64,000 nucleotides of DNA from Trichoplax adhaerens (taxonomy: Eukaryota > Animalia > Placozoa). The DNA is taken from positions 590,556 to 654,555 of the forward strand of contig NW_002060967.1 of the NCBI RefSeq assembly GCF_000150275.1, written 5' to 3'. The notes under the pieces are model-generated. The model was given only the letters and a program-made list of their open reading frames with translations. It was not told the DNA's origin and made no database searches. Below, piece by piece: positions 1 through 63,522 of the stretch. Positions within the stretch are counted from its first letter, which is position 1; the number at the start of each line of letters is the position of its first letter. Position numbers and translations under genes: made by a program.

Positions 1-1282
1 ACGGTACTGGACATGGTATCGGAATTTTCTTAAACGTTCATGAAGGTTAGTATACCCTTAACTTTAAAATTGTTCATCAATAAACTACCATATAGTGTTA
101 TTCTGAAAGTGATACTCATCAGCATCCTAATCTAACGTACATATTTGACAATAAATAAACTGAATACGCCTCGCTCTAGGTCCTGGACGTATTGCACCTG
201 GTGTCCCACGGTATTACGAAAAACCATTATCACCCGGCATGTTCTTTTCAGACGGTAAGGAATCTAAATTTGATTTTCATGTATAGTTCATGCCTGAAGT
301 TTGTCCTCGATTTAATTATTAAGGTGCTGCTCTAGTAATTAAAATTACTCTGTAATGTTTTTTATCAGAACCTGGATATTATGAAGCAGGTAAATTTGGC
401 ATCCGATTGGAAACTGTCGTTATGGTTAAAAAAGCAAAGACTCCTGTAAGTTGATATAGTGCTATAATGTACATATGCATGCATGCAATTTAATGTCAGC
501 AATGTTTGTATTAATTAAAAAAATATCGTAAGCGAGTATCAGATCCACTTTAAAAGGCTAGAAAACAATTTATGGGATATAGTCCTATATGCAACGTTAT
601 GACTAATTACAGTATATGATAATTTAATTTATCAAAAGATTGTATAAATTTATTTTGGGTGTAAGTGACTGGTATTTTATTTTTTAGTATAATTATGAAG
701 GAATGCAATTCTTGGACTTTGAAGTTATTACTTTTGTAAGTTTGTTAAATACTGGATAGTAGTTGCGTGTAGCGTTAACTGAGATAAAATATCTTGTAAG
801 GTGTTGTTCCTACTTATAATATGCTCAAGTATTAATAAAGCTATAGTTAAAGGTATATTTAGCGTAAAAATTAGAGTTTATGCTTGCTATTTTTTTAGGT
901 TCCAATTGATATCATCAATTTAATAGACCTTAAATTGATGAGCAAAGAACAGGTTAGATTCAACGGTTATTATGTTGGATGATTGGTAACGTTAAAATAT
1001 GTATAATATGTATTCAATGTTTTTGTGTCTATTAACTTGAAAATATAGAGAGTCTGGTTGAACAAGTACAACTCAGATATTCGCACTAAAGTTGGCCCTT
1101 ATTTGAAGGAACGTAAATGGGATGAAGGTTACAACTGGATGTTGGAATACACTAAACCTATTCCAATTACCGATGAACAGCCTCCTAACGGCAACAGCGC
1201 TTATAGTTCTTCTAATACTGTAGCTATTGCTTTAGTTACTGCCACTTTGATGATGATTGTTAACTATTTCAATCGCCACTAA
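1..1282 (+). CDS. XPNPEP2: Xaa-Pro aminopeptidase (aminopeptidase P, M24B), XPNPEP2-like, probably GPI-anchored; 3' part only
   Basis: GT-AG exons 1-45, 180-254, 369-445, 688-735, 899-952 and 1049-1282 splice in frame to GTGHGIGIFLNVHEGPGRI...GMFFSDEPGYYEAGKFGIRLETVV...FLDFEVITFVPID...LMSKEQRVWLNKYN. These are the metal-binding M24 motifs (HGTGHG, VHE, EPGYY, GIRxE). The protein ends in small residues plus a hydrophobic tail (NGNSAYSSSNTVAIALVTATLMMIVNYF). AATAAA at 1432. Confidence 0.93.
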
Positions 1283-2256: not shown

Positions 2257-5102
<2,846 letters not shown>

Positions 5103-5260
5103 AGTTTGAGTGGTTAGCCAGCGTCCAGAAAAATAACGATGGTAGTGATAATGGCAGTAATAGTTAGGCCAAAAAGACGCCAAAGAGATGATCGGAAATC
5201 GGTTTGCAAGGCCAAAAAAGGAGCGCTAATCGACGCATATATGGCGGTGGTCCTTAAAAT

Positions 5261-14946: not shown

Positions 14947-15801
14947 ATGAAATTTACGGCATTATCATTGGTTTTCTTCATCTTCAGCATAGTACCTTTT
15001 ACTATACAGGCGGTAAGTAATTTAATCGATTGATATCCGCATAAACTGCTTTTTTATTCTGTTTCAAAAAGGTTGTTATAATCGCTTATTAATTTTTTGG
15101 GGAAAATTTTTTATTTTAACAATTAGACTACCAATGCGAAATCTTGCCTACAGGCTAAAGATATAAATGGAGTTAGCGAAAATGGTTTCTATATCCTATA
15201 CGATAACCAATATCGACCGTTTATCACATTTTGTGATTTCAATTCTGATAAAGGATTTATTTGGACACTTATTGAGTCATTTTCCTTGAATAACAGCATG
15301 AAAGCCAAATATCGCAAGGGATTTTTTCAGGATTTTCCAACTGTTAGTAGTTTTATTGACTTGCAGGAATTTCGATTAGAGAACTCAGTTATGAAATCGA
15401 TTGCTGGTGCGCCAGGATCGACCCATTTTCGCACAACATGTAATTTTAACACGAATGACCGCAAAGGAATACAGAATCATCTAGACTATTTGCGTGTATC
15501 ATTTTGTAATTTTCCCAATTTCTTTAAAAATGTTAACAAAAATACATGTACTAAGGTGGATTATATTAATGTCCAAGGACAATCCTGCAGAGATTGTAGT
15601 ATTCCAATACATGATGGCGGTAATGAACATCATATGTTAGCTAACATCGACAGATCCCCGGACGATTGTGATCGTTTGAAATTTGGAGGTGCAAAAGGAT
15701 ATGCTTTTGGTGATTACAGGCTTTTAGATTCAAAATTTTCATGTTCAATGGCATCTAATTCGACTACCAATTGGTGGATTGGAGGTGCAGATATGTCGTA
15801 A
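14947..15801 (+). CDS. Secreted cysteine-rich protein with fibrinogen/intelectin-like N-terminus (copy A, 246 aa)
   Basis: Exon 1 (14947-15012) is the signal peptide MKFTALSLVFFIFSIVPFTIQA followed by GTAAG. Exon 2 (15127-15801) reads TTNAKSCLQAK...NGFYILYD...PFITFCDFNSDKGFIWTLIESFS...THFRTTCNF...NWWIGG. The SC..K..G.Y.....F..FCD.....WTLI pattern is the start of a fibrinogen-related domain. Confidence 0.88.
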
Positions 15802-21099: not shown

Positions 21100-21977
21100 A
21101 TGATGTATAGATTATTCTCATTGCTGTTAATATGCTGTATGATGCCTATCTCTATACAAATGGTAAGACTATTAATAGATTGAAATCACTTCCGTTCATT
21201 TATTTACTGTTCATCGCATGCTGTAAATTAATATCGGACGTACGAGTATACATCTTTATGATTCCAATTAAATAATGTTGCAATTATTGTATTTAGACAA
21301 TTAAGCCTAAATCTTGTCTACAAGCTAAAGAATTAAAAGGCGCTAGCAATAATGGTTTCTATGTGATATACGATAGTCTCAATAGACCATTTACTACATT
21401 TTGTGATTTTAATTCTGATGTTGGATTTGTTTGGACACTTATTGAATCGTTATCGTTAGCTAATGCTAAGAAGTCCAAATATCGTAAAAGTTTCTATTAC
21501 GATGTTTCAACAAGCGGTTGTTCTATTAACTGGTCAGAATTTCGATTATGTAAATCAGTTATGAAATCGATTGCAGATGCACGAGGATCGACACATTTTC
21601 GGGCAACATGTAATTTCAATATAGAAGATATTAAAGGAATTAATAATCATCGAGACTATCTACGAGTATCATTTTGTAATTATCCGAATTTCTTTAAAAA
21701 TGTTGCTGCTCATTTTTGTACAAAAATGGACTATGTTAATATTCGAGGTCATACATGTCGACAGTGTAGTATACCGTTATATGATGGTGGAAGCAGCTAC
21801 CACATTTTACTTCAAGTCGATCACGCGAAAAATATCTGTGATAAATGGGTAGTTCCAAATACAGTCGTACACGATTTCGCTTTCGGGGATTACAGGTATA
21901 TGAATTCTAAATTTACATGCGCAAATTCATCTACTTCTACTACAAATTGGTGGATAGGCGGTGCGTATATCTCGTAA
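21100..21977 (+). CDS. Secreted cysteine-rich protein with fibrinogen/intelectin-like N-terminus (copy B, 247 aa)
   Basis: Exon 1 (21100-21162) reads MMYRLFSLLLICCMMPISIQM followed by GTAAG. Exon 2 (21297-21977) reads TIKPKSCLQAK...NGFYVIYD..NRPFTTFCDFNSDVGFVWTLIES...STHFRATCNF...DYVNIRGHTCRQC...NWWIGG. Intron position and phase match copy A. Confidence 0.88.
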
Positions 21978-25056: not shown

Positions 25057-25262
25057 GATTTACAGTTCTATTTTTACCTATACACTTATTAGTAACTCAA
25101 CACCTTACTGTATATAGTCATCTGTGCTCTAGCATAGAGTCTATACCATTACAGTCTATAGTTATAGCTACCAAATATCTCTTAGGATAAATATCTACCG
25201 TACATTATACTAAACATGGCTAACAGTCTACAGTACAATCACAATACTAGTTACATTACAGT
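25057..25262 (+). repeat. Dispersed repeat segment B (inverted copy at 62970-63170)
   Basis: Reverse-complement match to 62970-63170 (for example ACAGTCTATAGTTATAGCTACCAAATATCTCTTAGGATAAATATCTACCGTA). Confidence 0.88.
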
Positions 25263-27830
25263 AGTATTCTAAGAGGTGTGTAAAAGCTTGTAGATAAAAT
25301 CTATTTAAACGATTGGATAAATTAATAAAAGTTAGTTCTTAGTTCCTAAGGTTAGAAGTATAACGTAAATCGAAGGCGCACGAATTATTGCGAGATCGTA
25401 GATTCGATCACAACGTTATCTTGTCATATGGGAGTTTGTGACAATACCCTATCTAGAGTTTATATTTCGTTTGGATAGGATCGAACCTATCTACATATAG
25501 CAATTTCAGTTATTTTACAGTAGCAATATGTTTTGAAAGTGTAATTCTAATATAAAGAAAATACTGTCATATAAATACAGTCGTTTAAGCTTCCTTATAG
25601 TACAGTTATTCAAATCAAATTGTAGAAAACTCCTTTTATTAGAAGTATTTACTGGAAGATTCTAGGAAAGAAAATCCGTGACACCTTAACTGCGTCTATT
25701 AAAGTGGCTTTAGAAATTGTAACCATAATGAGATAGCTAAAAACGCGGATGATTATAAGGATATGCATATAATGTACCGTAATGCTAGGAAGTACTTCTA
25801 AAGCTTGTACAAATAAATTCATGCATATAGCCAGCTGTGCCGATCTTGCATATCAATTTAAATTAAGAGAATAAACACCAGTACCACTGTTTGAAGCACC
25901 TTAATGATAAATAGGCAAAGATACCAATTCATTCAAAATATTTTGTATCTATAATTAGAGTTGTAGCTATAACCATTATAATCGTACTCTTTGCCTGTCG
26001 AAATAAAGTTGAGCTCCATCAAGATTAATATATCAGATCAAGGTATTGCTGTTGATAATGGTGTTTATAAACTAGATGACAACATCAATTTCATTATAGG
26101 CAATAAGCAACAAATGCATTTCAGATAACAACGATTTACTTTTTATGTGGGAGCAATGTTAAATTAACTTTATTTAAGTGCCAACGATATCAGTATATGG
26201 ATTGCTTGATTATTACTAACTAGCTCAAAATGAAACGACATCTGATGCATTCAGATTTTAGATATAAGGTGGGAAAGCTAAGTATTACAGGAAATAATAC
26301 AAATACATAATTATTCGCGACGGTTAAAATCTTTTCTATCTTTAGAAACTCCCTTGACAACAATACCGATTGCCTTAAAGGATCAAAGACCGGAAATACC
26401 GGCTACGACATTATTTTTAAATCTTGATACTATTTCTTCCAGCGTTAGTAGTACAGTCCAATGTACGCATTGAGTACTCCGTTCAAGTCGTTACTTACTG
26501 TTGTCGATTTCCAATCGCTATGTTTTACTAGGCATAACCGAGAAGGTTGCTAGGAAATAACTTTCCGTTAAAGCATAAATTAAAATACTTTCAGGTAGCA
26601 ATACTTACAGATAACATAAGGATTGATATAGTTAATAAAGGCCACATACTTAACAACGTGGGTAAATTGTCTTATTAATATGATAACAAATGACGCTCTT
26701 ATTGACGTTTCTTAACATATATTAGGATAGAATTTAGCATTTGTTATCGGTATTTGTGTAAGATAAAATTATTGCTGGGTACAGTCGGTCAGATTTGATA
26801 ATTCATATATACTCGTAAACTTATGGTCTTCAAAGTAATGATAACGGTTCCAGTACGTTAGCTGAAGAGATTAATCTTAAACCATGTTTAAAGAATAATA
26901 CTGATATCAGTATTGCGGCACTTATTACATTATTTCCGATTGATGCTTAAGGGTGTTCATTTTGAAGTCTTGAAGCTAAATTAAATAGTATACATTTAAT
27001 GTTACTGAAAATATGAAACATATCTTTAATTGCTGATGCATGTGCATGTTCAACCATTAATAAAATTATTCACAAATAGATTACGCATAAGTGCAATTTA
27101 CTTTCTCAACTGAGATAATGTTAGCTATCAAAAATATTGGTAATAAAATAGTCTACAAATACGTCAAAGTTTAAATTTAGTACTAAATGATATTGTCAAA
27201 GTTTGTATTTTCAAACACGGCATTTTGTAAAATCAATAGGTATTTCATGTGCTGTTACAAAACAGCTTTGCAATAAGATAACGTAATGCACGATCAATCA
27301 GTCCATTCCCTGAACCACGCATCAGGGAGCAGTATCTACTCTTTCAGGAACTCTTTCCCTATACTAGTAGACTACTAAAAGACTTAGACTCCTCGTATCT
27401 TACGTTAAACACTAATCATAAGAACTCACTTCATTATATAATTTATCGTATTTATATACTCTTTTACAATAGCAAAGACATCCTGGTTAGTATTATTAAC
27501 ATTGAAACCTGATAATGAATCAAAAGCTAATTTTATCTACTGCTCCATAATGTAGACAACAGTATTTACGAACATAGACATCGAATGACTAATACAAAAT
27601 TGTCAGATTACAATATGTCCTATCTCGGAACATTTCTACGATAATCTACGATCTACTATTAGTAAATTACAATCACAGTGATTTGAATGGTAAGAAGATT
27701 ATTCTCACTTCCCTAATTAAGCTACTAGTTTCAGTAGGCCGTATATATATATCACCATAAAAGCTAGTGCTATATTTAAATATCACATATCTAAATTAGA
27801 AACTCATCATATAAGGGTAAATCAACAAAA

Positions 27831-30800
27831 TTATCCTAACATAGATGTCTCTACTATAATCTCGATATTACAGTGTATAACACTGTAACATGCGCCTAAC
27901 CACATTTTAACATTTAAGAATACACCATGTTTATATATTGATTTCACCACATAAAAAATTTCATTATTAGGAGAAAGATCAGACAGAATTTGCTGAAATT
28001 TGCAGATGATTGCACTAAACTTCTTAAATATTGATTCAATTTTGTAACAACTTACCCAACCTATAATTTCCAACCAGGAGTCGTTATGACCAGTTGATTT
28101 ATGACTTCTATCGCGTGTACTGTGTTTGCTTACAACGTTACTCTCTATTTTTGACTGGCAATATGTGATGATCTCATCACATAGTAGTAGAATACAATTC
28201 AAATCCTCCATCGATGCAGCTGCGAAACTGGGAAATTGCATATTGTCACCAAATATTTTGGCGGATGTAAAGTCGCCTAGTAGGCACTTAATCAGACCCT
28301 GTTGATTGAAACATTAGAAATAGGGCTTAAATCGAAAGTATAGTTAATTACGCTAAGTTAAATAATCTCAGAATTTTAAATAATTAAACGCGCTTTAAGC
28401 TAAAATTTACTCTAATTGTGCTAAGTTAGAATCCAATACAAAAGCGTAGCATTCAACGTACATTACGAAATTAAATACCATCAAAAGAAAAAAATATCAT
28501 CTTCATAATCTTATTGCAGGCTATCAGTCATGCGTATTATTTACTAGTATTACCGCTTAACTTGAATAAATACTAAATATGTCCGAAATTAAAACAAGAG
28601 CTACTAAGAGCACAAATTATTAACTCTTAGTAGCGTAAAACTCAACACCAAATAACAAATTATAAATACGTGAGTAATGTGAAAGTTCAACAGATGTTGA
28701 TTCCCCAAATCATGATTACAATTTAAGGATGTGCGTTGATGCGTACCGATACTTATCACATCTGTACGCAGTAAAAACAACCTACAACATGAACTTTAAA
28801 TAAATTAGACTATTCAAGCAGTTCTAATAGTATTCATGTTACATTTTATATATTAATTAATGCATAGTCTTTTACTAACGTACCGTACCTCATCAATGAT
28901 AACAATAAATATTGTGCGAGAGTTGATATTGCCGTGGATAATTAAATTAGCTCGCAACGATTTTACAGCTTTTAAAAGATCATTAAAAATTTGTTTAATA
29001 GATTCTGGAGTCAAGTATTCAGATTTGTTACACAGTAATTCGCGTAGAGTGGCTATTTCTTCACCAGGCAGCGAGTAACATACCATTCTGAAAAAATGTT
29101 TCATGTGCATGCAAGTAAATTTTGACACGCATTATTTTCTCTAGATATTTATAATTGGTATTATACAAGCTTATTTTTTTAAACGTGCTATTTACAGCTA
29201 TCTATAAGTAAAGTTTATTACCTATGGCACTATTCCGGTTTGACTATAAAATAATTATTGTATAAATAGATTATGTGATAACTACTTACCGTTTACTTTG
29301 TAATTTTGCTGGAATCTTGAATCTATGGCTTTCTATTTTAAACTTAGGACGCTCTAATGCCCAAAGGCATTGTAGTATGTTCTCTACTCGCATTTCTTGT
29401 AGTTTAATATGACAATAAAACTGCTTCTCCTTCTTCCAATCTCCAGCCTCTTTCTCACTGTAATACTTGAGCCATGCAGTTGTGCTTTCTTTATTGCTCT
29501 GATAGATGAGTTTAACTTTGAAATAGTTCTGTGTGGTAACAGAAGTTGAAGAATTTACCCCTTGGCTTGGTATTTTTTTATGCTACGTCAACAATTCTAT
29601 GAATTTTGTCCCTTAGTGAAGTTATCTGATGCAACTTTATACCATAAGAGCAATATTGAATTTAATAACTTCTATGCAATTAACATGTAATATTTCCGCA
29701 CTATTAACTTACAGATGAAACAAAATCTGCTGCAGCAGTCCGAGCAATAGATATTTTTTCAAGGCATTTCGTCTTCTGATCTAATAAGAAAGACAACATG
29801 ATATAAAAGATAACTTTAACATTCCATACTCACAAATCATATGAATAAGAATACCATTGTGCAATGTTTCGCATTCTATATTCATGTTGTCAAGGTGCAT
29901 CGTAAAACTCGACTAAATCCAATTACTTCTTGTGATAGCGAGCGATACTTAATTTATCTTTCAAAAAGACTCAATAATCGTCTTCTTCACGATATTTCAG
30001 TTCTTGTAAGTATAAAACTACTGGTGCAATAGAAACTGCATTTTGCATGATAATTATGAGTGATCATAAATTCTGCCTTCGTACTATTGTTTACAGTTTT
30101 GTGTATTAGCTATTGGAATAGTAAGCTATCGTGAAAATGAAAGTAAGTTAATGATTTAGATATCTATTGTATAAATGGAAGTGTACCTTCGAAACATGTC
30201 ACAGTTAATATTGAGCGTTTCAGATAATCTTACTCCAACTTACTTCCAATTTGATAGTAAGACCGATCTTGAAGTAAATCTTTACTACTGGCCCATTTTA
30301 CCTTATCACAGCAGTTTCCAAGAGATCTTACAATTCTAATAGAACGATCTAAAAATGTTTGAGTGAACATCGTGTAAATTATTGGATTAATACACGAATT
30401 AAGCGGTAAAGATAAGACAGCAATAAATGGCAATACATGAGTGTCCAACTCAGAGTTGATTAAGCCGATAATCAGAATAGCATAAAACGGAAGCCAGCAT
30501 ATAAGATCAGTAGCTACAATAGTAATCATCTTTGCTACAATTATTTTATCTAATCTGGAAATTTGAACATTTGCCTCGCGACGAGATTTTGCTAATGTAA
30601 TAATAATGCCAGAATACATAATGCTGATGATAGCCCAAGCCAAGAATGTTACACCGCAATAACATAAAAGCCATAATAATAGATAAGGATTGCTAATATT
30701 ACCGGGCAAACAAGCCCCATTAACGCTATGCAAACGATTATTAGGTGTCTGATTAAAACCATAAATTATTGGTAAACCTGTAAATACGGCAGAAATTGCC

Positions 30801-33800
30801 CAAACAATAAGGAAGATATTGAATATCTGTCTGTAGGAAAGACGATAATTTTGAAACGGATAGACTAAATATAAGTAACGATCCAGTGTTATAAGAAAAA
30901 TGACCAATGTCGACACGAAAGTAGAAATTGAGACTAGAAAAGAACATATTGAGCAAACTGTACTCCGTAACCAAACTTCGTGGTATTCAGCATAGACTCC
31001 AGAAAAGTAGATGTTGGCTGATGCGATAGTTGTCAAGTAAATACCCATCAGCAAATCTGCTGTTGACAGATTAATAATTAAAGATCTGACAATAATATAG
31101 TCCTTGTTTTTCCCATTTGTATGCCATATAATTGAAACGATATTGCCAATGATGGACAGGACTCCAATTAGCCAAATGAAAACTCGTAGTACTCCATGTG
31201 ATAAAATATCTGAGCAAGTTGATAAACTGAACTGATCTGGTAAAGGCTGGCAAATAGTTACAGATCTTCCAACGTAACAACATAGATAATCGAGAGTTGA
31301 AAGTCTAGTATCAACAAAGAACTTACAGTCAATGCAATCATTTTTTAAGTTACATTCATGTTGGTAAAATATTTAACATTTATTAGCATTTCAGTTTCTG
31401 CATAATTGTTCTAAATAGTATTAAATATTAAGCAATATTATTTAGACTTGTAGATTGTATTACTGAAGATACTTGGTATATAAGTGCTATGGTTTTACTT
31501 TCAATTTATTAATCTGGTAAAGGAAATCTTCCTAGTACTATACGATCAATTAGAATTACCCTTCTGATGCTTGTTTGTTCAACATATTGATATTTTATTT
31601 CATTTAGGTATTGTAGCCCAATTTAACACCATTTAACTATTTCATCACTCAATTAATTCTTATTTATAAATAATTTCTTGTATAGGAAGATAGTTCTTAA
31701 TAATTTGATGAATAAATTAGTAAATACTTTCAATTACTACAATTCATATCAGAACTAAAAACTTTATTTATCATCACAGTAATTACCTATATTCCCAATT
31801 TGTTGCACAAAGGTTTTACAATAAATTTTTGATAGAATCTGTTATAATCTCTCAAGTTTGTAATGAAATACGTCCCTTTAATACACTATCAACAAATCAT
31901 TGTCAAACGGTGCTATCTCGTTAATTGTAACAGAATGATGCTAAATACCATTCAAGATTTAAAAATTAAATATGCCAAATGTGGCAGCTACCCTAGAGCA
32001 GATAAAGCAAAATTTCCAAACTTTTGTGGTATTAAAATCTCAGCAAACCGTAAACTATCTAAACTTAGAAATAAATTACCGTTACATGCAATTACGGTAG
32101 CCGGTGATGTTGCTAAAATTGATGGTATATATATAGCCCTGATCGGTAAAATATTTAATTTTCTCTACGCTATTTGTTAACTCACTATCACTGCATTCTA
32201 ATTTTATATTTTGGCCTAAATATAAAATGAAGTCATTTTAGTGTTTGCTAAAACTGGAATTATTCTGAACTTACTACTATGGGTACTCTTTATTACATTG
32301 AAACAACACTGCCTGGTATACCAACGCCAAAAATACTAATTAAAGTTATATCTAATAGTCTTATGCAAGGGTTGCCTGAGTAAGATACATGTATCTAGCG
32401 ATATTATTTTCCTCTGCTTTGAAAATGAATATTGAAGAAGTTGAGTATAAAAAATGTATTATTAAAAAATTAGTTTAAAAGAACTTTTCAACGTATAAAA
32501 TTTATAGGTCGTGTGCAATCTGGTGGGCTTTTATTCTAGATAAATCTAACGTCTTAAATAGATTTACATGAAGGCTTTCAAATAGATTTGTAGACTACGC
32601 CGCTAGAAATCAATTTACGAGTATAATACTCTACTTACAAATCTGTCATACCAGTGCTTCCAAGTAGAGAGTGGGTTGTAAATTCTATCAAGGGATTATT
32701 TCTTAAACTTCTATAAATATGAAAATAATAATAAAATTTTAATGAAGATTTAATTTTAGTCTTATCCTTCACTGTTTACTTACAAATGGCGAATAAATGG
32801 AAAGCTATTTAGACAGAAAGGAGTTAATTTCGAAATCTGGTTGTTATTGATACTCCTTCAATTTTAGATGTGATAGAAATTGAAATAAGTATAAAAGTTG
32901 TTTCAGAACATTTGCTAATTCAATAAATAAAAATAGTATATTTATAAATACAACTAGATACTAAAGAAAAAAAGATTGGCCTTAATTTATCGTGCATTAT
33001 ACATGAAATGAGCTGGATAAAATAACATGCAAGCTTATTTAACTGCTACATTATTGGAAAAATAAATTCAAACATACAGCTTCAATAATTTCGAAGCAGC
33101 TGCAGTAAATTTCGCAGGTACGCACATATCAGTTATGTAATTGTTATCGACATTTCTGTAACAGAACCAATATTAATATTAGATTGAGATCCATACCAAA
33201 TATATTTGGCTTTTAATAATCGCTATCTGCCACTAACGATTGAAAATATTGATGTTATGGCAATGCTGTTTCTAACTTACAAAAATTTCAGACTTCCTCG
33301 ACTTAAAAGTGATAAATAGTCACTAGTTTCGAGTTGATTGTCGCTTAGCAATCTAATCAAACCAATATAAAAGTAAAATTCTTACATTATCATGAAAATT
33401 TCTATAGTTAATGTAGACTCCTATTTTAGCAATTACGATAAGGGCGACATAATTGGTAAATATCCCTCGTTAATAAATTGAAGCTTCCAATATCTTCATT
33501 CATTAAAAGTGATTAATAATTTTTAAGAGCAAATTTCTATCTCTGTATTTTTGCCGTACAAATCCTCAATATTTGTTGAAGGTGGAAGCGTTTTAAGACC
33601 AATCGTCTTTAGTTGGCAGCTTATCATTATACTATATATAGAAATTGAAATCGTTACATTCCTTATCTTGAACTACGAGATTAACAAATGTGTTAAGAAA
33701 AAGATTCAATCCGTAAATATCTCCTTAACTTATTTAAGAAACTTACAGTTGTTGTATTTCATGTATCCTTGAAAATAGACCCTCAGGTAATTGACCGAAC

Positions 33801-44400: not shown

Positions 44401-45229
44401 ATAGTAGGTACATTATTTTAAACGAAATAAAGTGAGATAAATAAGTTCGGAATATTTCAAATAATAAGGATGCTAGAAAAAAATTTGCTGTAGTTTATCA
44501 GATTTTTCTTACTCTAATAACTCATTTTGTTTGAGGGAAGAGTGTCTATGCTTTAATTTTGTTCAAGTGAGTTTGAAAAATCTTTATGTATTTAATTTGA
44601 AAGTGACACGCAAAATCATCATTGTAAATGCAATGATTCATATGGAGAAGATTACATTAGTCGTAGTAATTTTTTTTTTTATCTTAGGAAAACGAACTAG
44701 AATATCGAAAGTAATTTATACTGTTAACAATCAATAGTTCTTCAATTTATTATCTAAGGTTATTAATATCTATTCCTTTACATAATGCAAGGCATAATCT
44801 ATTTTATTAGGGTAATGGTTAAAAGTTGTATTTTGAACGAACTGTCATAGAAAGGGTTTGCGTACGGATCAATTAAGATTTTCTTAGCTATTTAGTAACT
44901 AGCAGATAATAGTTGTATTCCCCAATTTCTTAGGTAGTAGAGTTAATACTCAGAAAATGGATGAAAAAGATTTTTTTACTTAGTTAGCTAGACTAATTCT
45001 TTCATAGTTTATATTGAATTAATGCACTAGCGTTACTATGAAAATTTCTAATAGTAGTCTTATTAATGAATAGTCTTATTAATGAACTGGAAAGGGTATA
45101 AATATTTTATCTAGCGCCTTTAATTGAGGATTAAATCGAAACTATTACATGCAGATCTAGCTATCCACGTTCACATAAACTAAATCCTGTAAACACAGGA
45201 AAATTTATTAAAATATCCATAAAACTTAC

Positions 45230-46781
45230 CCAATCTTGAGCTGTCTTCCAATCACTACTACTGTAGGATATTGCGACATTATTGATATGTAAACTATTAT
45301 CAGTGGTTGTCATATCCTCTAGTATTTTGAACTTGCAATACGCAAGTAGTGCATCACACAACTGCTTCATGTTGCTATAATCATTCATCTGTAAATCAGC
45401 AAAATTTGGATATGGCATAGCATCATCGAATATTTGTGTAGATGAAAAGTCACCTAAAAGAGCAGTAATTTTCTTTCCCTGTTCATAAATATATATATGG
45501 AGACCGTAAACATTTTTAATACAAACTGAAATTTTGAAAAAGTAGCTATAGCATACGTATATACATCTGTGCTTGAAAATATTTGGTATAATGTTTGATA
45601 TCTACTTGACTATCTGGAACTTGCTACATTATCCTTATTGTCAGTACTATAATAGCATAACTCATCAAAGTAAATGCAATTACGCGCCAAGTGTGAATTA
45701 AACAATAGCTTGGACGAATTTACACGTAAGGAATACATAAGTATTCTAACTGCGTATCATGCCTTGTTGATTTATCTAAACTATAAATAGAGATAACTAA
45801 GTTTTATGCCTTACTTACATAATAATTTAGAGGAATGCAGTTTCAAGATATAATCTTAATACGTATTATTATTAAAACATGAATCTCTAAATTTACTTAA
45901 ACCGTGTTGTATAATGTCATAATGCTTTCATCAAAATATGTTTTAGGTCTAGGATCAATTAAACTTCATTAGGTGCATTACTTGATAAAAAAGATCTTGT
46001 ACGTTTAATTTCTTCTAGTTTACAATAATTACCATTTAGATTCTTGAGAAAACTGAAGGCAACGCATTTAACAACAATACATTCTTAATTTCTGATTGTT
46101 GATCCTAATTGAACTATTCTATTGTTATCGGGTTGCATATGTTAAAATTTTTATCATTCGCATGGTTACTTAAAACTACTGATTTGAATACCTGGCTCAG
46201 TAGTGCTATGAATATAGCGTCCATATGGATATTACCGTAGATAATTGAATGAAATTTCAATGAATTGAAAGCAACCTCGATATCCTTAACGATTTGGATA
46301 ACACTTTCTGGCGTTAAAAAATCGGATTGACTGGAGATTAAGTCACTTAATATTCCTATATCTTCGCCAGGTAATGCATAACATATCAATCTACAAAGTA
46401 ATGGATAATTGTTCTGTCATCAGGCTAATAATATATAAACCGACGATTTTTTTATTATTGTCATTGTATGAATATTGTAACATAAATCGTTCGATTTATG
46501 ATGAATTGTTAGTACTTTAAGATTGCAGCATAAGTTTCCATATCTTACAATCTATTGTGTATTTCTGCTCCAAATCTTTCACCATCTTGTACTTTATATT
46601 TATTACCACCTTCAAACCAAATGCATTCCACAATATTACTTATATGCCAATTTCGTAGTGCGATATCATAATAAAACTGTTTTTCCTTTTCCCATAAATT
46701 TCTATCTTTTCTATCGTAGCATTTAAGCCATCCAAGTTTACAATTCTTATGGCTTAGGTCAATCAGTCTTAATTTGAAGTT
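45230..46781 (-). CDS. Pseudokinase-domain exons of paralog 2
   Basis: GWLKCYDRKDRNLWEKEKQFY...HISNIVECIW, IIYGNIHMDAIFI and ALLGDFSS. Intron positions and phases match paralog 1. Confidence 0.8.
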
Positions 46782-50128: not shown

Positions 50129-50832
50129 GGGGCTACATGGTAATATTGTGAGTGGTAAGATAAGATTGTATAAACGGGCATAGTAAAACTATACGACTTT
50201 ATGTATTTTGGGTACCAACGGTAATAAATCAGTTTTAGCTTGCATCTCCTACAGAGTGTATTTTGCCAGTTGTTATATCGGCAGTCCTGTTATACGACTC
50301 GGCTAGCAGCACAATGTATATTACAAGATAATGGTTATATGCCTGTGTTAGTACAAGTTACATAGCAATGAAGCGTATCGATTAACAGTAAATCTAAATC
50401 TTTATCCGCCTTAATCTACATTTCTAATAATAAATCACAAAGATGTCTATCCATAGAACACTGTAGCAATCTTATACGTTAGTTTAATAGATTTTTGACT
50501 AAGGTGTATGACACTACTGAATATTTCGAAACTAGGAATATCTAATATATGGCAAGAACTGTTCATCATCTCTATTATTAGTTCAGAAAATAAATCATAA
50601 TTTACTGCGTTATTACGCTGCCTAATTTTTAGAAGTTATGGAAATATTATTAATCACAGTGTTTCAGTGATACTGTAATAAAGCGATTTTGTAGACTACA
50701 GTTCAAAGTGCCTACTGATTGTAGGCCTTTTCGAAGGGTAGTTCTTTGGCATTATAATAGCAGTATTGCAATTTTACTCGATCTTACAAAAGATTACTAC
50801 TGTAATTTGTATAGTAATTTTAAAATACTTAC

Positions 50833-51874
50833 ATTTGCTGAAGCTATAAGATTGATTCCTAGGCAATTTGATCGATGAAATATATTGCAATATATTTCTT
50901 ATAAGCATAGAGGCGTGATTCAAGAAGGTTTCGGTGAATATTGTATACAAGACTGGATTTATACATGAATTCAGAGGTAAAGATAGGACAGCTACAAACG
51001 GTAACGAATGTGTGTCCAACTCAGAGACTATTACGCCTCTAATAAGGATAATGTAAAGCGGTAACCAACATAGAAGATCAGTAATTACAACACTAATCAT
51101 CTTCGTTTGTATAATTCTATCAAAGAGCGAAACTTTTCTACATGCTTCTCTGCGCGATTTCGTTAAGGTAACCAAGATTACAGCATACATACTGCAAATT
51201 GTTATCCAAATTATAAAGGTGACGCTACAGTAAATTAATAGCCATGATAGCAGATAGGGATTTCCTATATTTCCAGGCATACAAGCAGCATTATTACCGT
51301 GTATACGATAATAAAATGTCTGATTAATGCCATAGAGTGATGGTAAGCCGGCAAATACAGCGGAAATTGACCAAAATAAGAAAGAGAGAATTATAATGCA
51401 CGATACGATAAGCGATAATTCTCAAATGGATAAACCAAATATAAATAGCGATCTAGAGTGATTAGAAACATGATGAATGTCGACATCAAAGATGAAACGG
51501 AGATAAGAAACGTTGACATTAAACAAGCTGGACTTTGTAACCAGATTTCATGATTATCAGCAAAGCGTCCACTAAAGTATGCATTCGCTGATGCGATAGT
51601 AATTAAATAAATACCCATCAGTAAATCGGCAGCAGATAAGTTAAGAATTAGTACTTTTACTATTACATATTTTTTTTGCATATTTCGAGTATGTAAAGCT
51701 AATGAAATTATATTGCCAATGATGGATAAAGCACCGGTAAACCAAACAAATATTCGGAGTATCCCATGAGACAAAATATCATTACAGGTTGAGAGACTGA
51801 ATTGATCAGGTAATGGCTCACAAAACAATATTCTTCTAGGGGCATGACAGCATAGATACTCCCGCGATGAAGCT
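50833..51874 (-). CDS. Hinge + 7TM exon of paralog 2 (frameshifted)
   Basis: YLCCHA...CEPLPDQFSLSTCNDIL, NLSAADLLMGIYL, ITLDRY, then a frame change before CIIILSFLFWSISAVFAGLP, TDLLCWLP and LPLNSCINPVLY. The ORFs 51391-51828 and 50774-51280 are in different frames. Confidence 0.9.
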
Positions 51875-54800
51875 CTGTATTCAGTTAGTAAACATATTTA
51901 GTGAAACTTCAGAACAACAAAGTTAAAACAGTAGTTTTATACATGGAAACATTCTTATACTAAGGTAAATAAGCGAACTTACTGATTAAATAATTTGGCT
52001 TAACTTACAAAAATGTTGAACTACAGTAATTAGCTAATGCATCACTAACCAATGAAGAATGATGATTTATTTCAATATCCGCAGAAGAAATAGCTAGATA
52101 CTTGCTAAGATATGGTAAACCTAGTCAGTAGTTTCTAATACATATGTTTTATCACTTAGAGTATCTGTGATGAATCGAATATACGTACAGCTGGGCTTGA
52201 TATCAAATTACCGGAGAATAAATAATTACTTATTCTTAAAAATTTCGGGCACGGAATCATTGAACATCGATAGTCTTAATTCTTTAAATGCTTATGTCAA
52301 CATGCCCAGTTATTCAATAGTTATTTAACTTTTCAAATCAGGTGTGGTTAGAATCTAAAAGGGTATCACTACAAACTGTTTGCACTAGTTTTACCGGATA
52401 CTGGAAACATCTAATGTCATAGTTATAAACCCTTTAAGAATGAATCAAAAGAGTCTAATGGGCTTTATTAGATTCATTTCATAACATCTTTTTTCTTAAA
52501 AGGTTATGAAAATCACTCTGGAACATTGCTGCCATGATACTTACATATCTGATAGTAATGAAGCAGCAAGTAAAGAATATCTATTGAAGTGGATCAAAGG
52601 GTTATTCTTTATTCTTCTGTAAAATCAGAATTAAATAAAGTCAGAGAATTGCTGTAAATTTTAACTTGTGAGCAATTTAATAGTAGCGCTTCAAGACTTT
52701 AGGCAATAGCCATAGCTCAGATAACATACTTTAGGGCCTCCTTTTGACAGTTTATGAGTCATTACTAAATTTACTAATACGGTAATATTGTTGAATATTA
52801 CTTATTTCAGATAAGCCTAAATATATATATATGTGTTATATATATCGTATGTACGAATTAATAATGTAGCCATATCTATTTTTCTAACAGTCCTACAGCA
52901 CCTTATTTGGATCTTTTATAAAATGGTACGCTATCTTATATCTGTTTTTGTTTTCAAAGACGTTCTTTTAGACAAATACAGTAATTTATTGGAGAGACCT
53001 CTAACGGAGCTATTTTGTGTCATTTATTAAAAACTATTAAATATAGCGCGGTAATCGTAGTTGTTCCAGGTATGTAATGGTACAAAAATGAAGATGTTGC
53101 AACATATAGGCCATATAAAATGATTTTAAAGGCATGATCATCTGACCAAAAATTAATTCACTTACAGGGCACGTAGGCTTCGTAAATTTGCAAAGCAGTA
53201 TGGTTCCAATTTGACAATTTGATTATTATTGAGATTTCTAGATATTACATTATTGAGAAAATGAGAAAAATTGTATAAGTTCATAATTCTTACGGATTTA
53301 AAAGTGAAATATCAAGTAGATACTTGGAGCAATAAAGATATTCGAATATTCAGAAGCGAGCCAATTACTGCAAGAGGCATATACTGCATGAGCTCCACAT
53401 AAATTATTACATTAACTCTTTAAGTCGTGCAGCCGCTTCGTAGTTGCTCTTAGACTTATTTGACTGTATTGAAACAATACTGTTTATACGCTAAGCATTT
53501 AAGCGGCTTCACGTGTGGTAAATATTACTCGCAGTTATTGGCTTATTTAAGTCTGAAATTTTAAATTAATACGCCTGCAATGGATTTTAATTTTGTTTAC
53601 ATCAGAAAGTATATAATAATCAATACTGGTAACAGATATTTTGCAAACTTTCTATAGAATTTAGGTATTTTGCAAAATAGCTGATTTCACAACTTACTGT
53701 TTTAACATGTGTTCAACTGATGCTGTATAATAAGGTAACAAACCGGTGAAATCATATACTGTACTTAGGCTATGATATTTTGTGATACTTTTCAGACTGC
53801 ATTCATGCTTACAGTTCTCTTAATTTCCCATTTTCGATCTTCTGAGTTACACATATATCAGATATGTTGTTATAATCAAGGTTTCTATAATGTAATTAAT
53901 AGTTAAAATATAATTAACGCTAGTGGCTTCTAAAATATAGAGTTTGACTTGCAAGTTAGGCCATTATCATTAGCATATTTTGAAATTTAACTTAAAATGA
54001 AAATGTTAAGGTCTAATTCCAATTTCTCATCACTTACATCACCAGTAAGTTAGTTAACTTCATTAGAGATAAATAGTCCCTGTTCCCAAGTTGATTATGG
54101 TCTAATATTCTAAATGAAAAGATATTGCTTTAAAATCAAATCAATGACATAATTTTTATTATAAGTCTATGCTTATCCATCTTTTATTTATTAACAATAT
54201 AATTTAATATATGATTTATTGTAGTAATTGTGGACTAAAATTAAATTTATACCTGGCACCCCTTCAAATTCTTAATTCTTAAGTTAATTAACTACATTAA
54301 CATTTATTGTATAAACTTTCTCTCACCAAATCAAAATTATTTACAGTTTAAGAATATTAGTATTCTGGTTTAAATTTGTGCCGTATTTATAAGAATTTAG
54401 TCCGAAATGTTTATTATACAGTAAATAGACTTGCATCGGTCATAAATGTCGTAAGCAAAGCTGATGTTTAAACCCATAGTAGGTCAGATTAAGTAGGAAT
54501 AGCTAACACAGATAGGTGATATCAGTATCAGTAGCTGACTGACTGGGATTAAGTTGGGACGAAAGCCTGAAAAGAATTTGTTTATGCCTTTACTCGATGC
54601 TGGACTCTAGAGATCAATACTATCCAGTATATTTATTGATTTTTATTACTGTCAACTAATCTTAATCATAGCCTAATCATAAAAATGACTTTACAACAAG
54701 AATCTAGGTAGCTAGGCAAATTACGTCTTCGCTTACAGATCCGTAACACGATTTAAAGTCGAGATGAACCTTGGACCGATAATTTTAAGTTGACATTCTG

Positions 54801-60800: not shown

Positions 60801-62969
60801 TGGATTTGGCCATAAATTTAAACTTTTTTGAATTAAAATAATCTGTCTACAGTACTTGAATTATTCGTAGGCAATGGTATAGTTTTTACTTAAAATTTCT
60901 GAGCATAGGGTTATATATCAAATATAGACATTAAATACAAAATTACGTTAAATTGGAATAGTAATCCATGTGATAGAAATGTTGTAGTTAATACGACTAG
61001 ACTGAATTTTAAGCACTTCCTTGACGATACATTTTAGATGCCTTAGCATCTATTATTAGAAAGTTTACTAAAGTTATAACTCTGCAGGCGGCTGGAATTA
61101 TCATAATATTAAAGTTCTATTTAAGACCGCACAAATGACGAATAAAGCACTTTTAGTAATTTCTCCGAGTTCTTCGTGAGTTGCACTGACTACTGTAGTT
61201 GGCTAGGGATCATCAAATGTAGTGTAGTTCCTTTATAGTAAATTGCCTAGTGACTTTGCTCTAGATTGGTTCTGGTCTTGATTACCGGCGTAGCGGTATA
61301 GCAATAGTAGTGATAGAAGAGGAAGTATCTCTTCTCATTGCATTATTGTATTTAGTGAAATTTTAGTCTGTCACAAACTTGTGCAATTAATAACGTATAT
61401 ATTATTCAACTACGGGATTTGTTCATTATATTCAAAAATACTGACACAAATTACGTTATTCCTAAATTTATTATTCAGAATTTTCTTATTCTAAATTGTA
61501 AAATATTCGAGTAAATTTATTCTTACAATTGCAAAGGAGCAAATGCCGAAAAAGTATTCGAGCCAATGTGATTTATAAAGTTATGTGTTAGGCGTCTGTA
61601 AAGAAGTAGAGGCTTCATTAAAGTCAGTTAAAAATAACTATTAATCATCCAAGGTACATAAATATTATACTTATATTTACAATTGATTTTTTTTAACATG
61701 AAGTAATTCAGATATACAGTAGCCTTTCTCTTAGATTTTATTTAATAATGTTTTAATTAAAAATACTTATATTTATAGTCTATCGATATCCTAAAATATT
61801 ACGATTAAATCAAGTTGAACTGAATTCAGCACTAAACTACTTGATACTTCTATATCAAATACGTACAAATCTTTTAATGATACCATATCTTTGAAAGTTT
61901 CAGGTTCTAAGATGGAAATTTCGTTAACAGACAGTACTCTGAAGCAAAGAAATTGTTTTAGTTTTCTACAACAGTAAAATTAAAATTTTGTCTATACTGT
62001 TAGGTTCTGCCTGAAAAGTTTATAAATGCCTGAGCTTCAAAGTATTTAATCCACAGATTTCAAAATTACATATTGAAAGTTGAAGGTTAGTTAATTGAGT
62101 TGCATAAAATTAGAAAGTAATTTTACTCACAATTTTTTGACGAACCAACATTCTAAAAATTGCCAGCGATTAAGTTTTTTTATTTTGTTGATATACAAGA
62201 TTCTTTGATGACAAAATGTCCGAATTTAACGAATATAAAGTGCATTTAAGTATCGTTAGTGATTTAGTATCGTAGTTATAACTTATGAGGACTATCTAAA
62301 ATAAATAGCGTATATCTAGAAAGATTTCTTACATTTTCTGTAGACTGGTACCATTGCACAAGTGATTTGGTAAACTTACCAATCGATTTCTCCTTAAATC
62401 CCTATCAAAAGTATTACATACATAATCATCGCCTTTTATTTGCACACGACTAGTAAATTATTTATATTTCCATACCTCCAAGTATGAATTACGTTTACTG
62501 TAAATAGGTTTGACATATTTAAGTGCGATTTTGAGTATTCTGCCAAGCTAACAAACAAGAACTAAATATACGTGCAAATATACAATTTGACATCAAAATC
62601 TTTCAGGAAGGTATGAAGGTGATAGTGTGATGGTTCATGAAAACCTGCTTAAATCGATAAATGGTCCATGATGGTTTTATGTTATTTATTATATGAAAGT
62701 AACAATTAAAGCATATTTATGAAGTGAAACGCTGCTAAAAAGTTCAAGTGAAATTTTAACAGGCCAATCTAAAATTTTAACTTCTGCTTGCTTACAAGTA
62801 AAATTCATTACATCAACTCAAACTGACCACTTATAATATGAAGCAGTAAAACAAAATCTCATCTTTGAAGCGACATAATGTAATTTTGTTATTGCGGGTG
62901 CTGACTTATTTTATATTAGGTTATTACGTAAAATTTCTGGTAAATTCTATAATAATTCTATCATACAAG

Positions 62970-63522
62970 ACTGTAATGTAACTAGTAATGTGATTGTAGA
63001 CTGTTAGCCATGTTTAGTATAATATACGGTAGATATTTATCCTAAGAGATATTTGGTAGCTATAACTATAGACTGTAGGTGTATAGACTCTATGCTAGAG
63101 TACAGATGACTATATACAGTAAAGTATTAAGTTACTAATAAGGCTATAGGTAAAAATAGAACTGTAAATCAGATATTAGGATACGGTTAATTCATTGTAC
63201 ATTGGCTGGTGTGAATAATGTCTACTTAAGTACTGTAGTCGTATCCATATTGGATTAATGATGGCCCGCAGTAGAACAGTCTTACTAAGAATAATTTAAC
63301 TATGTGTAATATAAGGTAAAAGGTTGCCATGCGGATTGTAGCTGCGAATGCTACGAAAAGTATAAAAGCATGCAACTTTAGATTATTCTGTTAGTTCGTT
63401 GTAGAAGTCTTTAGTAGTAGTATTCGGCTAGAGTAGAGCTGTATGTAGTTAATCTTTGTATAAGATCCAATAAAGCCCTTATTTTTCTAAAATTTGGAAT
63501 CTCGTGATCGGTATATATCACA
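62970..63522 (-). mobile_element. Composite dispersed repeat (segments A+B), probable non-autonomous element in an intron of paralog 2
   Basis: 63189-63522 is the reverse complement of 12438-12770, and 62970-63170 is the reverse complement of 25057-25262. No ORF is present, and no terminal repeats were identified. Confidence 0.6.

Follow-up and report, generated by a model that had tools for sequence, protein, structure and literature searches.

What kind of domain follows the receptor core of a G-protein-coupled receptor with leucine-rich repeats (LGR) in the placozoan Trichoplax adhaerens, and from which protein family does it stem? The question is raised by a window of 64,000 nucleotides (contig NW_002060967.1 of assembly GCF_000150275.1, positions 590,556 to 654,555; coordinates below are those of the window unless another contig is named), in which an earlier note had read the minus-strand stretch 28889-29528 as a kinase domain of the TGF-beta/activin receptor type, that is, of a receptor serine/threonine kinase (STKR), shuffled onto an LGR tail. 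We found that two pieces of a kinase-like domain are encoded here, its N-lobe and its portion from the hinge to the catalytic loop, and that the complete domain, of about 240-300 residues, is a very divergent protein-kinase-like domain. Gene structure and gene models support the reading that this kinase-derived domain serves as the cytoplasmic tail of the LGR, in one reading frame with it. The most likely source appears to be a kinase of the tyrosine-kinase-like (TKL) group and of STKR type, closest to the type II receptors, a reading to which we assign a probability of about one half.

A kinase-like domain in frame with an LGR

Paralog 1, the gene containing the flagged stretch, was searched exon by exon, and joined analyses were made on the database gene models P0003, P0001, P0010, P0007, P0020, and P0152. 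The genome searched was a 105.6-Mb assembly of T. adhaerens (1414 contigs, roughly 30% G+C). In order of transcription, the features of paralog 1 are as follows:

30244..31372, minus strand: hinge and rhodopsin-type seven-transmembrane (7TM) exon of the LGR (Pfam 7tm_1, E 3.3e-28)
29713..29780, minus strand: small linker exon of 68 nt, containing ..EKISIARTAAADF.. (placed by splice phases)
29290..29528, minus strand: kinase-like exon 1, with the N-lobe elements beta2, beta3 (LK), alphaC (W-x2-E), and beta4 (ENIL), without a Gly-rich loop; ends in phase 2
28889..29087, minus strand: kinase-like exon 2, with beta5, hinge, alphaD, alphaE, a catalytic loop that is degenerate (HGNINSRT), and beta7 (taken alone, the exon matches Pfam Pkinase at E 0.042)
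28056..28298, minus strand: kinase-like exon 3, with beta8, a degenerate DFG (GDFT), a short activation segment, an alphaF-like helix, and a conserved Trp (donor TGG/GTAAGT)
27831..27992, minus strand: tentative last exon, with C-terminal helices and the stop codon (acceptor TTTCAG/CAA, uncertain)

The 7TM exon has no stop before its phase 1 donor (GGAA/GTAAGT), which lies directly after base 30244. The linker exon has an acceptor in phase 1 (TTATTAG/AT) and a donor in phase 0 (TCT/GTAAGT), which match the 7TM donor and the acceptor of kinase-like exon 1, and its equivalent in paralog 2 (..EKISIISTSSTTEI..) is included in gene model P0003. Both ends of the flagged stretch, which spans exon 1, an intron, and exon 2, proved to be true splice boundaries, with the acceptor CACACAG/AAC immediately preceding base 29528 and the donor GAG/GTACGG immediately following base 28889. 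A single reading frame fits all splice phases from the 7TM exon through the kinase-like exons. The peptides quoted in the earlier note were likewise all found on the minus strand where it had placed them (AWLKYY...KQFY at 29477-29415, MRVENILQCLWA at 29393-29358, and HGNINSRTI at 28936-28910; those of paralog 2 at 46733-46671 and 46646-46617). At the end of the gene, the intron before the tentative last exon is 63 nt long and in frame, so that read-through is also possible, and this exon weakly resembles the tail of P0010 (..KSVIYES.. versus ..KSIYKHG..).

A tandem paralog in the same window, paralog 2, has a kinase-like exon set (46781-45157) that matches that of paralog 1, behind a 7TM region 58-64% identical to that of paralog 1:

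50777..51897, minus strand: LGR 7TM region, in two open frames that switch at about 51394-51421 (Pfam 7tm_1)
46549..46781, minus strand: kinase-like exon 1, part of P0003 (TRIADDRAFT_61685)
46192..46390, minus strand: kinase-like exon 2, with the catalytic loop YGNIHMDA (paralog comparison)
45230..45478, minus strand: kinase-like exon 3 (paralog comparison)
45157..45186, minus strand: last exon, nine codons and a stop (gene model P0003)

Gene model P0003 is identical to the spliced exons of paralog 2 and carries the UniRef name "Protein kinase domain-containing protein"; when P0003 was the query, a word-based protein search gave no protein other than P0003. Comparing the two paralogs by tblastx, we found nothing conserved beyond kinase-like exon 3, and the last exons of both are known from gene models and splice-site reading. 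The frame change in the 7TM region of paralog 2 is either a short intron or a frameshift, and runs of N mark assembly gaps inside this gene, at about 49.6-50.1 kb and 57.3-58.2 kb of the window.

There are 18-20 paralogous copies of each kinase-like exon in the T. adhaerens genome, one ground for taking the flagged stretch as more than a chance likeness. Since about 20 paralogs carry the domain, it would have been joined to an LGR gene before the family expanded. The host genes are placozoan-specific LGRs, with a leucine-rich-repeat (LRR) ectodomain and a rhodopsin-type 7TM region. The union of a kinase-derived domain with an LGR tail, as claimed previously, is borne out by the in-frame splice chain of paralog 1 and by four gene models that hold the 7TM region and the kinase-like tail in one protein (P0010, of 697 aa, P0007, P0020, and P0152). 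The last of these, a model of 1129 aa from Trichoplax sp. H2 annotated as "GRL101-like", is the orthologue of P0010 and carries many LRRs (LRR_8/LRR_4), followed by 7tm_1 and a sub-threshold PK_Tyr_Ser-Thr match. It could be argued that the 7TM and kinase-like exons are separate genes joined by prediction only, as the NCBI model of paralog 2 (TRIADDRAFT_61685) consists of the tail alone. However, the four fused models are independent and come from two Trichoplax lineages, the 7TM exon of paralog 1 is free of stops up to a consensus donor that agrees in phase with the exons after it, and in at least 10 fetched loci the TM7 motif of an LGR (LPLNSCINP..Y) precedes kinase-like exon 1 on the same strand, no more than about 1.2 kb upstream. 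Of the roughly 20 copies of the domain, at least 11 are situated shortly after an LGR TM7.

The kinase-like exons are under purifying selection, with dN/dS values of 0.16-0.41 among correctly registered pairs of paralogs, and the tail has thus been maintained. The tail evolves several times faster than the receptor core between the orthologues of Trichoplax H1 and H2: P0010 (residues 400-697) and P0152 show 11 amino-acid differences over the 298 residues of the kinase-like tail, as opposed to 2 over the 399 residues of the 7TM part and linker.

Two further observations concern the extent of the family. An additional insert of about 32 residues (FGTFYHPAHFW...) lies between the N-lobe and beta5 in P0010 and P0152 and in none of the other paralogs; it is either a genuine extra exon or a retained intron that was predicted twice. 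Six short family members (P0002, P0009, P0011, P0016, P0064, and P0134) were found in ENA assemblies only, some with H-[SN]-x-I in place of H-G-x-I, and the LGR-tail family may reach other placozoans or unsampled hosts.

A divergent kinase-like domain with degenerate catalytic motifs

The kinase homology of the domain was assessed with profiles of exon 1 (A1), of 11 exon-2 sequences (A2), and of the whole domain (A6), searched against 177,635 solved sequences of the PDB. At E<=10, profile A2 matched 612 solved kinase sequences, the best of them at 1.3e-5, and the alignments keep register from alphaD through beta7; A6 gave 431 matches at E<=1. The in-register profile similarity to kinases runs from alphaE through the catalytic loop and beta7-beta8 to the DFG region. 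Whole-domain hhalign comparisons with kinases reached probabilities of up to 97%, and the nearest neighbours in ESM features were kinase clusters throughout (0.95-0.97). An AlphaFold model of paralog 2 (pLDDT 73.5, pTM 0.65) has a confident C-lobe core (pLDDT 81-92) and, in its exon 3 part, a helix at 175-211. This model aligned with kinase C-lobes in VIA-align at Z of about 10 over roughly 120 residues and 3 A, led by TBK1, CRAF, IRAK4, JAK, ACK1, TNNI3K, and BRAF; because these rows are tied within 1 Z, VIA-align cannot separate STKRs from other TKL or tyrosine kinases (TKs).

A reader might still doubt that there is a kinase fold at all. No copy reached the Pfam gathering score for Pkinase/PK_Tyr_Ser-Thr (best 20.9 bits, in P0010, for a cut-off of 23.1), P0003 had no Pfam kinase match at E<=1, exon 2 was the one kinase-like exon to match in single-exon Pfam scans, and the exon-3 profile found no kinase in the PDB. 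Foldseek searches of the PDB with the paralog 2 model returned kinases only, but at E 4e-3 or weaker, with low TM-scores and no discrimination between families, and the N-lobe was modelled at low confidence (pLDDT 51-77), partly as helices. Set against the hundreds of in-register kinase matches and the VIA-align result, these shortfalls leave the notion that the domain has no kinase fold, or that the receptor and kinase-like exons are separate genes, as the most improbable of the readings considered here.

As a kinase, the domain is degenerate. A Gly-rich loop (GxGxxG) was not found upstream of beta2. The catalytic loop of the family reads H-G-x-I-x-x-[D/x]-x; HG stands in place of HRD, whose Asp is gone, and the catalytic Asn is lost or variable. 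The same holds for the DFG Asp, the DFG position having the form G-[D/K/N/G/V]-F-[S/T]. An APE motif is missing, the segment between DFG and alphaF is short, and so is the C-lobe. Every copy retains the alphaC Glu, and most retain the beta3 Lys. Because the Gly-rich loop, the HRD Asp, the catalytic Asn, and the DFG motif are gone, the LGR-tail domain is classed from its motifs as a pseudokinase, predicted to be incapable of phosphorylation. The segment HGNINSRTI had been likened to the STKR catalytic loop HRDxxSxN; its position is indeed that of the catalytic loop, but the likeness is weak, and the Ser occurs in paralog 1 only. We consider that the tail would most likely act as a non-catalytic docking or allosteric module, coupling the state of the receptor to intracellular partners.

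Likeness of the N-lobe to TGF-beta receptor kinases

The likeness to STKRs is found in one stretch of the N-lobe, beta3-alphaC-beta4, where the family reads K-x9-W-x2-E-[KR]-x-[IF]-[YF] ... ENIL, with a Lys-Glu spacing of 13. The invariant or near-invariant positions of the family N-lobe (Y22, W30, E33, F36, and N49) all fall on positions conserved in STKRs, at nearly the same spacing. We located four STKR kinase genes in the host genome, three of type I (at C1412, about 1.680 Mb and 1.685 Mb, and at C1408, about 4.98 Mb) and one of type II (at G000:C1399, about 438-440 kb), and the K-x9-W-x2-E spacing is present in all four. Of the signature that the earlier note had given for these receptors, the parts K-x9-W-x2-E-x3-Y and H-E-N-I-L hold in the four Trichoplax genes and in TGFBR2.

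Searches in both directions agree with this pattern. Against the PDB, profile A1 gave just three matches at E<=10, all of them TGFBR2 kinase constructs, in register (E 0.11), and exon 1 of paralog 1 alone had TGFBR2 as its top match (E 0.026, 59 residues, one gap). Against a panel of 170 proteins (the host STKRs together with 29 host TK/TKL open frames that a PF07714 scan had yielded and some 133 further kinases), A1 ranked the host type II STKR first and placed STKRs in three of the top four positions; taken singly, 11 of 13 family N-lobes had an STKR as their best panel match. In the reverse search, a 36-column beta3-beta4 profile of the host STKRs ranked family members first to eighth, with all 13 in the top 20. 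With a full STKR N-lobe profile, the Gly-rich loop included, ordinary kinases outranked the family owing to its lack of this loop, and the beta3-beta4 part alone is informative. Alignments by hhalign of A1 gave P 0.001 with the STKR N-lobe alignment and 0.0014 and 0.0023 with single STKRs, compared with 0.07-0.65 for 12 other host kinase N-lobe sets (including MLK-like TKL, Src-, Fes-, and CDK-like kinases). For the family gene models, the PK_Tyr_Ser-Thr score equals or exceeds the Pkinase score.

Origin of the domain

The STKR-specific similarity of the N-lobe is a direct observation, from which we infer that STKR ancestry of the whole domain is plausible. The STKR signal is confined to beta3-alphaC-beta4; STKR marks are absent from the C-lobe, which either lost them or did not have them in the first place. 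A series of results weighs against STKR descent. The top 60 PDB matches of the whole-domain profile A6 comprised IRE1, MST1/2, KSR, MAPKAPK3, CDKL3, TBK1, and others, without a single STKR. In whole-domain hhalign comparisons the host STKR I-a fell below ten other host kinases, although it was the only host kinase whose alignment spanned both the N-lobe and the catalytic loop. From the "LH" of alphaE to HRD there are 13-16 residues in the four host STKRs as against 5 in the family, and the catalytic loop motif K-S-[KRN]-N of the host STKRs has no conserved K-S-x-N counterpart in the family. The family has a phase 2 intron ahead of beta5 and a phase 0 intron ahead of beta8, and neither position recurs in any of the four host STKR genes. 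A site-heterogeneous maximum-likelihood tree of 40 kinase domains, in which one full-length STKR was included, placed the family on a long stem (2.46) with the backbone unresolved. In approximately unbiased (AU) tests, constraining the family with the STKR cost 0.13 log-likelihood units (p 0.47) and constraining it with tyrosine kinases 0.68 (p 0.46), neither being rejected. Searched singly against the PDB, the N-lobes of paralog 2 and of the family loci L002 and L012 yielded spurious matches only, with no TGFBR2 among them. Lastly, because the STKR-like signal amounts to about 25-55 residues at E or P values of 0.001-0.1, convergence has to be reckoned with.

How the previous proposal fares thus depends on the test. 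By profile, the N-lobe favours STKRs and the best whole-domain matches are non-STKR (IRE1, MST1/2, KSR, TBK1). By phylogeny, the family is not placed, and the tree has no resolving power, since both an STKR sister and a tyrosine-kinase sister survive the AU tests. The comparison of intron positions with the host STKR genes gave no support, and it is a weak test because the introns of the host STKRs also differ among themselves. Of the idea that a receptor Ser/Thr kinase domain was shuffled onto the LGR tail, the part that stands is the N-lobe similarity; the C-lobe, the introns, and the tree lend it no support. The further connection drawn in the earlier note, through the cystine-knot ligands bound by both TGF-beta receptors and glycoprotein-hormone LGRs, is speculative.

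The same results could be explained by descent from another eukaryotic protein kinase, either another TKL kinase or a Ser/Thr kinase of STE, CAMK, or IRE type, with the STKR-like beta3-alphaC motif arising by convergence or surviving by chance in a fast-evolving pseudokinase. Such an origin would be in keeping with the non-STKR character of the best whole-domain and C-lobe matches, the ordinary short spacing between alphaE and the catalytic loop, the lack of shared introns and of a resolved tree, and the marginal statistics of the N-lobe, for which three of four single sequences missed TGFBR2. However, the likeness to STKRs is reciprocal, runs through the whole family, and is absent for about 160 other kinase proteins, and a motif that arose or survived by chance sits uneasily with five conserved positions that all coincide with STKR-conserved ones at nearly the same spacing. 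We therefore regard another kinase source as quite possible, while falling short of probable.

The restriction of the STKR-specific signal to exon 1 also raises a mosaic origin, in which the N-lobe exon alone came from an STKR gene of type II-like kind and the C-lobe exons from a different kinase; exons 2 and 3 are indeed closer to generic Ser/Thr kinases, and an intron separates the N-lobe part from the C-lobe part. That intron, however, is of phase 2 and falls midway through the beta-sheet of a single fold, an improbable joint for shuffling; no candidate donor for the C-lobe was found, and uneven decay of a single ancestral domain is the simpler account, such that a mosaic seems to us improbable.

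The catalytic loop of the kinase-homology domain (KHD) of receptor guanylyl cyclases reads H-G-x-L/I. The HG.I of the family resembles it, and receptor-cyclase-like genes whose open frames are long are numerous in Trichoplax; a KHD could accordingly be considered as the source, and the earlier note had named it as an outcome that would speak against STKR origin. We found no support for it: neither A1 nor A2 (the latter at E<=10) had a match at the 13 strongest PF00211 cyclase loci, and no cyclase or dimerisation domain follows the tail, where the gene ends. Derivation from a KHD is, on these grounds, very unlikely. The guanylyl-cyclase genes themselves are clustered in the host genome (13 loci, e.g., C1405:24-63 kb and C1412:8.58-8.62 Mb), with open frames of 450-720 aa that run into the cyclase domain.

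Taken jointly, readings other than STKR ancestry and another kinase source hold only a small share of the probability. We thus favour, with the evenly balanced confidence given at the outset, a history in which a TKL-group kinase domain of STKR type would have been joined to an LGR gene, followed by expansion to about 20 paralogs.

Neighbouring features of the window

Other parts of the window hold the following features:

15127..15798 and 21297..21974, plus strand: tandem pair of paralogous, cysteine-rich open frames of about 225 aa, beginning ..CLQAK..NG.Y.., with no Pfam family above threshold
3919..4260 and 4944..5225, minus strand, and 1049..1279, plus strand: thymidylate kinase exons (matches of E 1e-6 and 4e-5 to Pfam Thymidylate_kin) and the C-terminal portion of a peptidase of the M24 family (E 5e-8)
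25057..25263 and 62964..63170, in opposite orientation: two copies of a repeat roughly 200 bp long, whose translations are about 80-93% alike

The thymidylate kinase and M24 peptidase genes are ordinary neighbours, and the repeat is probably a dispersed one.

Relation to known receptors and significance

Among known systems, the STKRs of the TGF-beta family (TKL group), and the type II receptors in particular, share with the LGR tail the beta3-alphaC-beta4 stretch and its Lys-Glu spacing of 13, and the beta2-beta3 loop of TGFBR2 has the same length as that of the tail. In contrast to STKRs, the LGR genes have no cysteine-rich ectodomain, single transmembrane segment, or GS region, and their tails lack the Gly-rich loop, the HRD Asp, the K-S-x-N motif, the catalytic Asn, DFG, APE, and the insert that makes up the 13-16 residues before HRD, in addition to having a shorter C-lobe and other introns. 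The STKR architecture was not found in the family: PF08515 and PF01064 matched host STKR loci only, and P0152 consists of LRR_8/LRR_4, 7tm_1, and the kinase-like tail. One separate locus, L045 (G000:C1414:4311000-4320999), has an ectodomain exon of Activin_recp type (23.2 bits), followed by ankyrin-repeat-like frames in place of kinase exons, of which the first 8.5 kb downstream are devoid; it is possibly a kinase-less decoy receptor.

Fusions of G-protein-coupled receptors (GPCRs) with kinases have been described as GPCR-TKL/K in acanthoecid choanoflagellates, as GPCR-TK in choanoflagellates and sponges, and as GPCR-kinases in oomycetes and amoebozoans; none has been functionally characterised, and the survey states that such fusions were not found in other animal lineages (PMC12716839). 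The Trichoplax genes are alike in combining a 7TM receptor and a C-terminal kinase-type domain in one polypeptide, but differ in that their 7TM part belongs to a rhodopsin-class LGR whose LRR ectodomain is long, and in that their kinase domain is, as predicted above, catalytically dead. Of the 46 LGRs counted in T. adhaerens by a 2022 review, 41 are lineage-specific and show unusual hinges and numerous LRRs (PMC9545775), and the host genes described here are of the kind found in this placozoan-specific expansion. The word "kinase" is absent from that review, which gives no account of the cytoplasmic pseudokinase tail that about 20 of these genes carry; searches of the literature on Trichoplax for "pseudokinase" or "kinome" likewise turned up nothing on these LGR-tail genes. 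A parallel in form is offered by the KHD of receptor guanylyl cyclases and by other receptor-attached pseudokinases, which similarly place a dead kinase fold on the inner face of a surface receptor, probably as a regulatory or docking module. Unlike the cyclases, the LGR tail has no cyclase output domain, and no sequence affinity to the host cyclase genes was detected.

The more far-reaching version of the STKR proposal is that in the placozoan lineage an LGR gene captured the kinase domain of a type II TGF-beta receptor and that the N-lobe surface of the dead kinase still engages type I receptors or other parts of the TGF-beta pathway, with about 20 LRR-bearing GPCRs directly feeding, or else sequestering, Smad-type signalling. 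We consider this version unlikely, although its consequences would be considerable. As it stands, a conserved dead kinase tail is found on about 20 LGRs of the rhodopsin class in a placozoan, and even if the STKR likeness is convergent, these receptors provide a useful example of a receptor-attached pseudokinase family. If descent from an STKR is true, the family would represent a rare documented transfer of a domain between the two main receptor classes for secreted ligands, and would supply a concrete hypothesis for the signalling route of orphan LGRs. Should the STKR-type N-lobe also engage the TGF-beta pathway, these genes would constitute a class of hard-wired GPCR/TGF-beta hybrid receptors in an early-branching animal.

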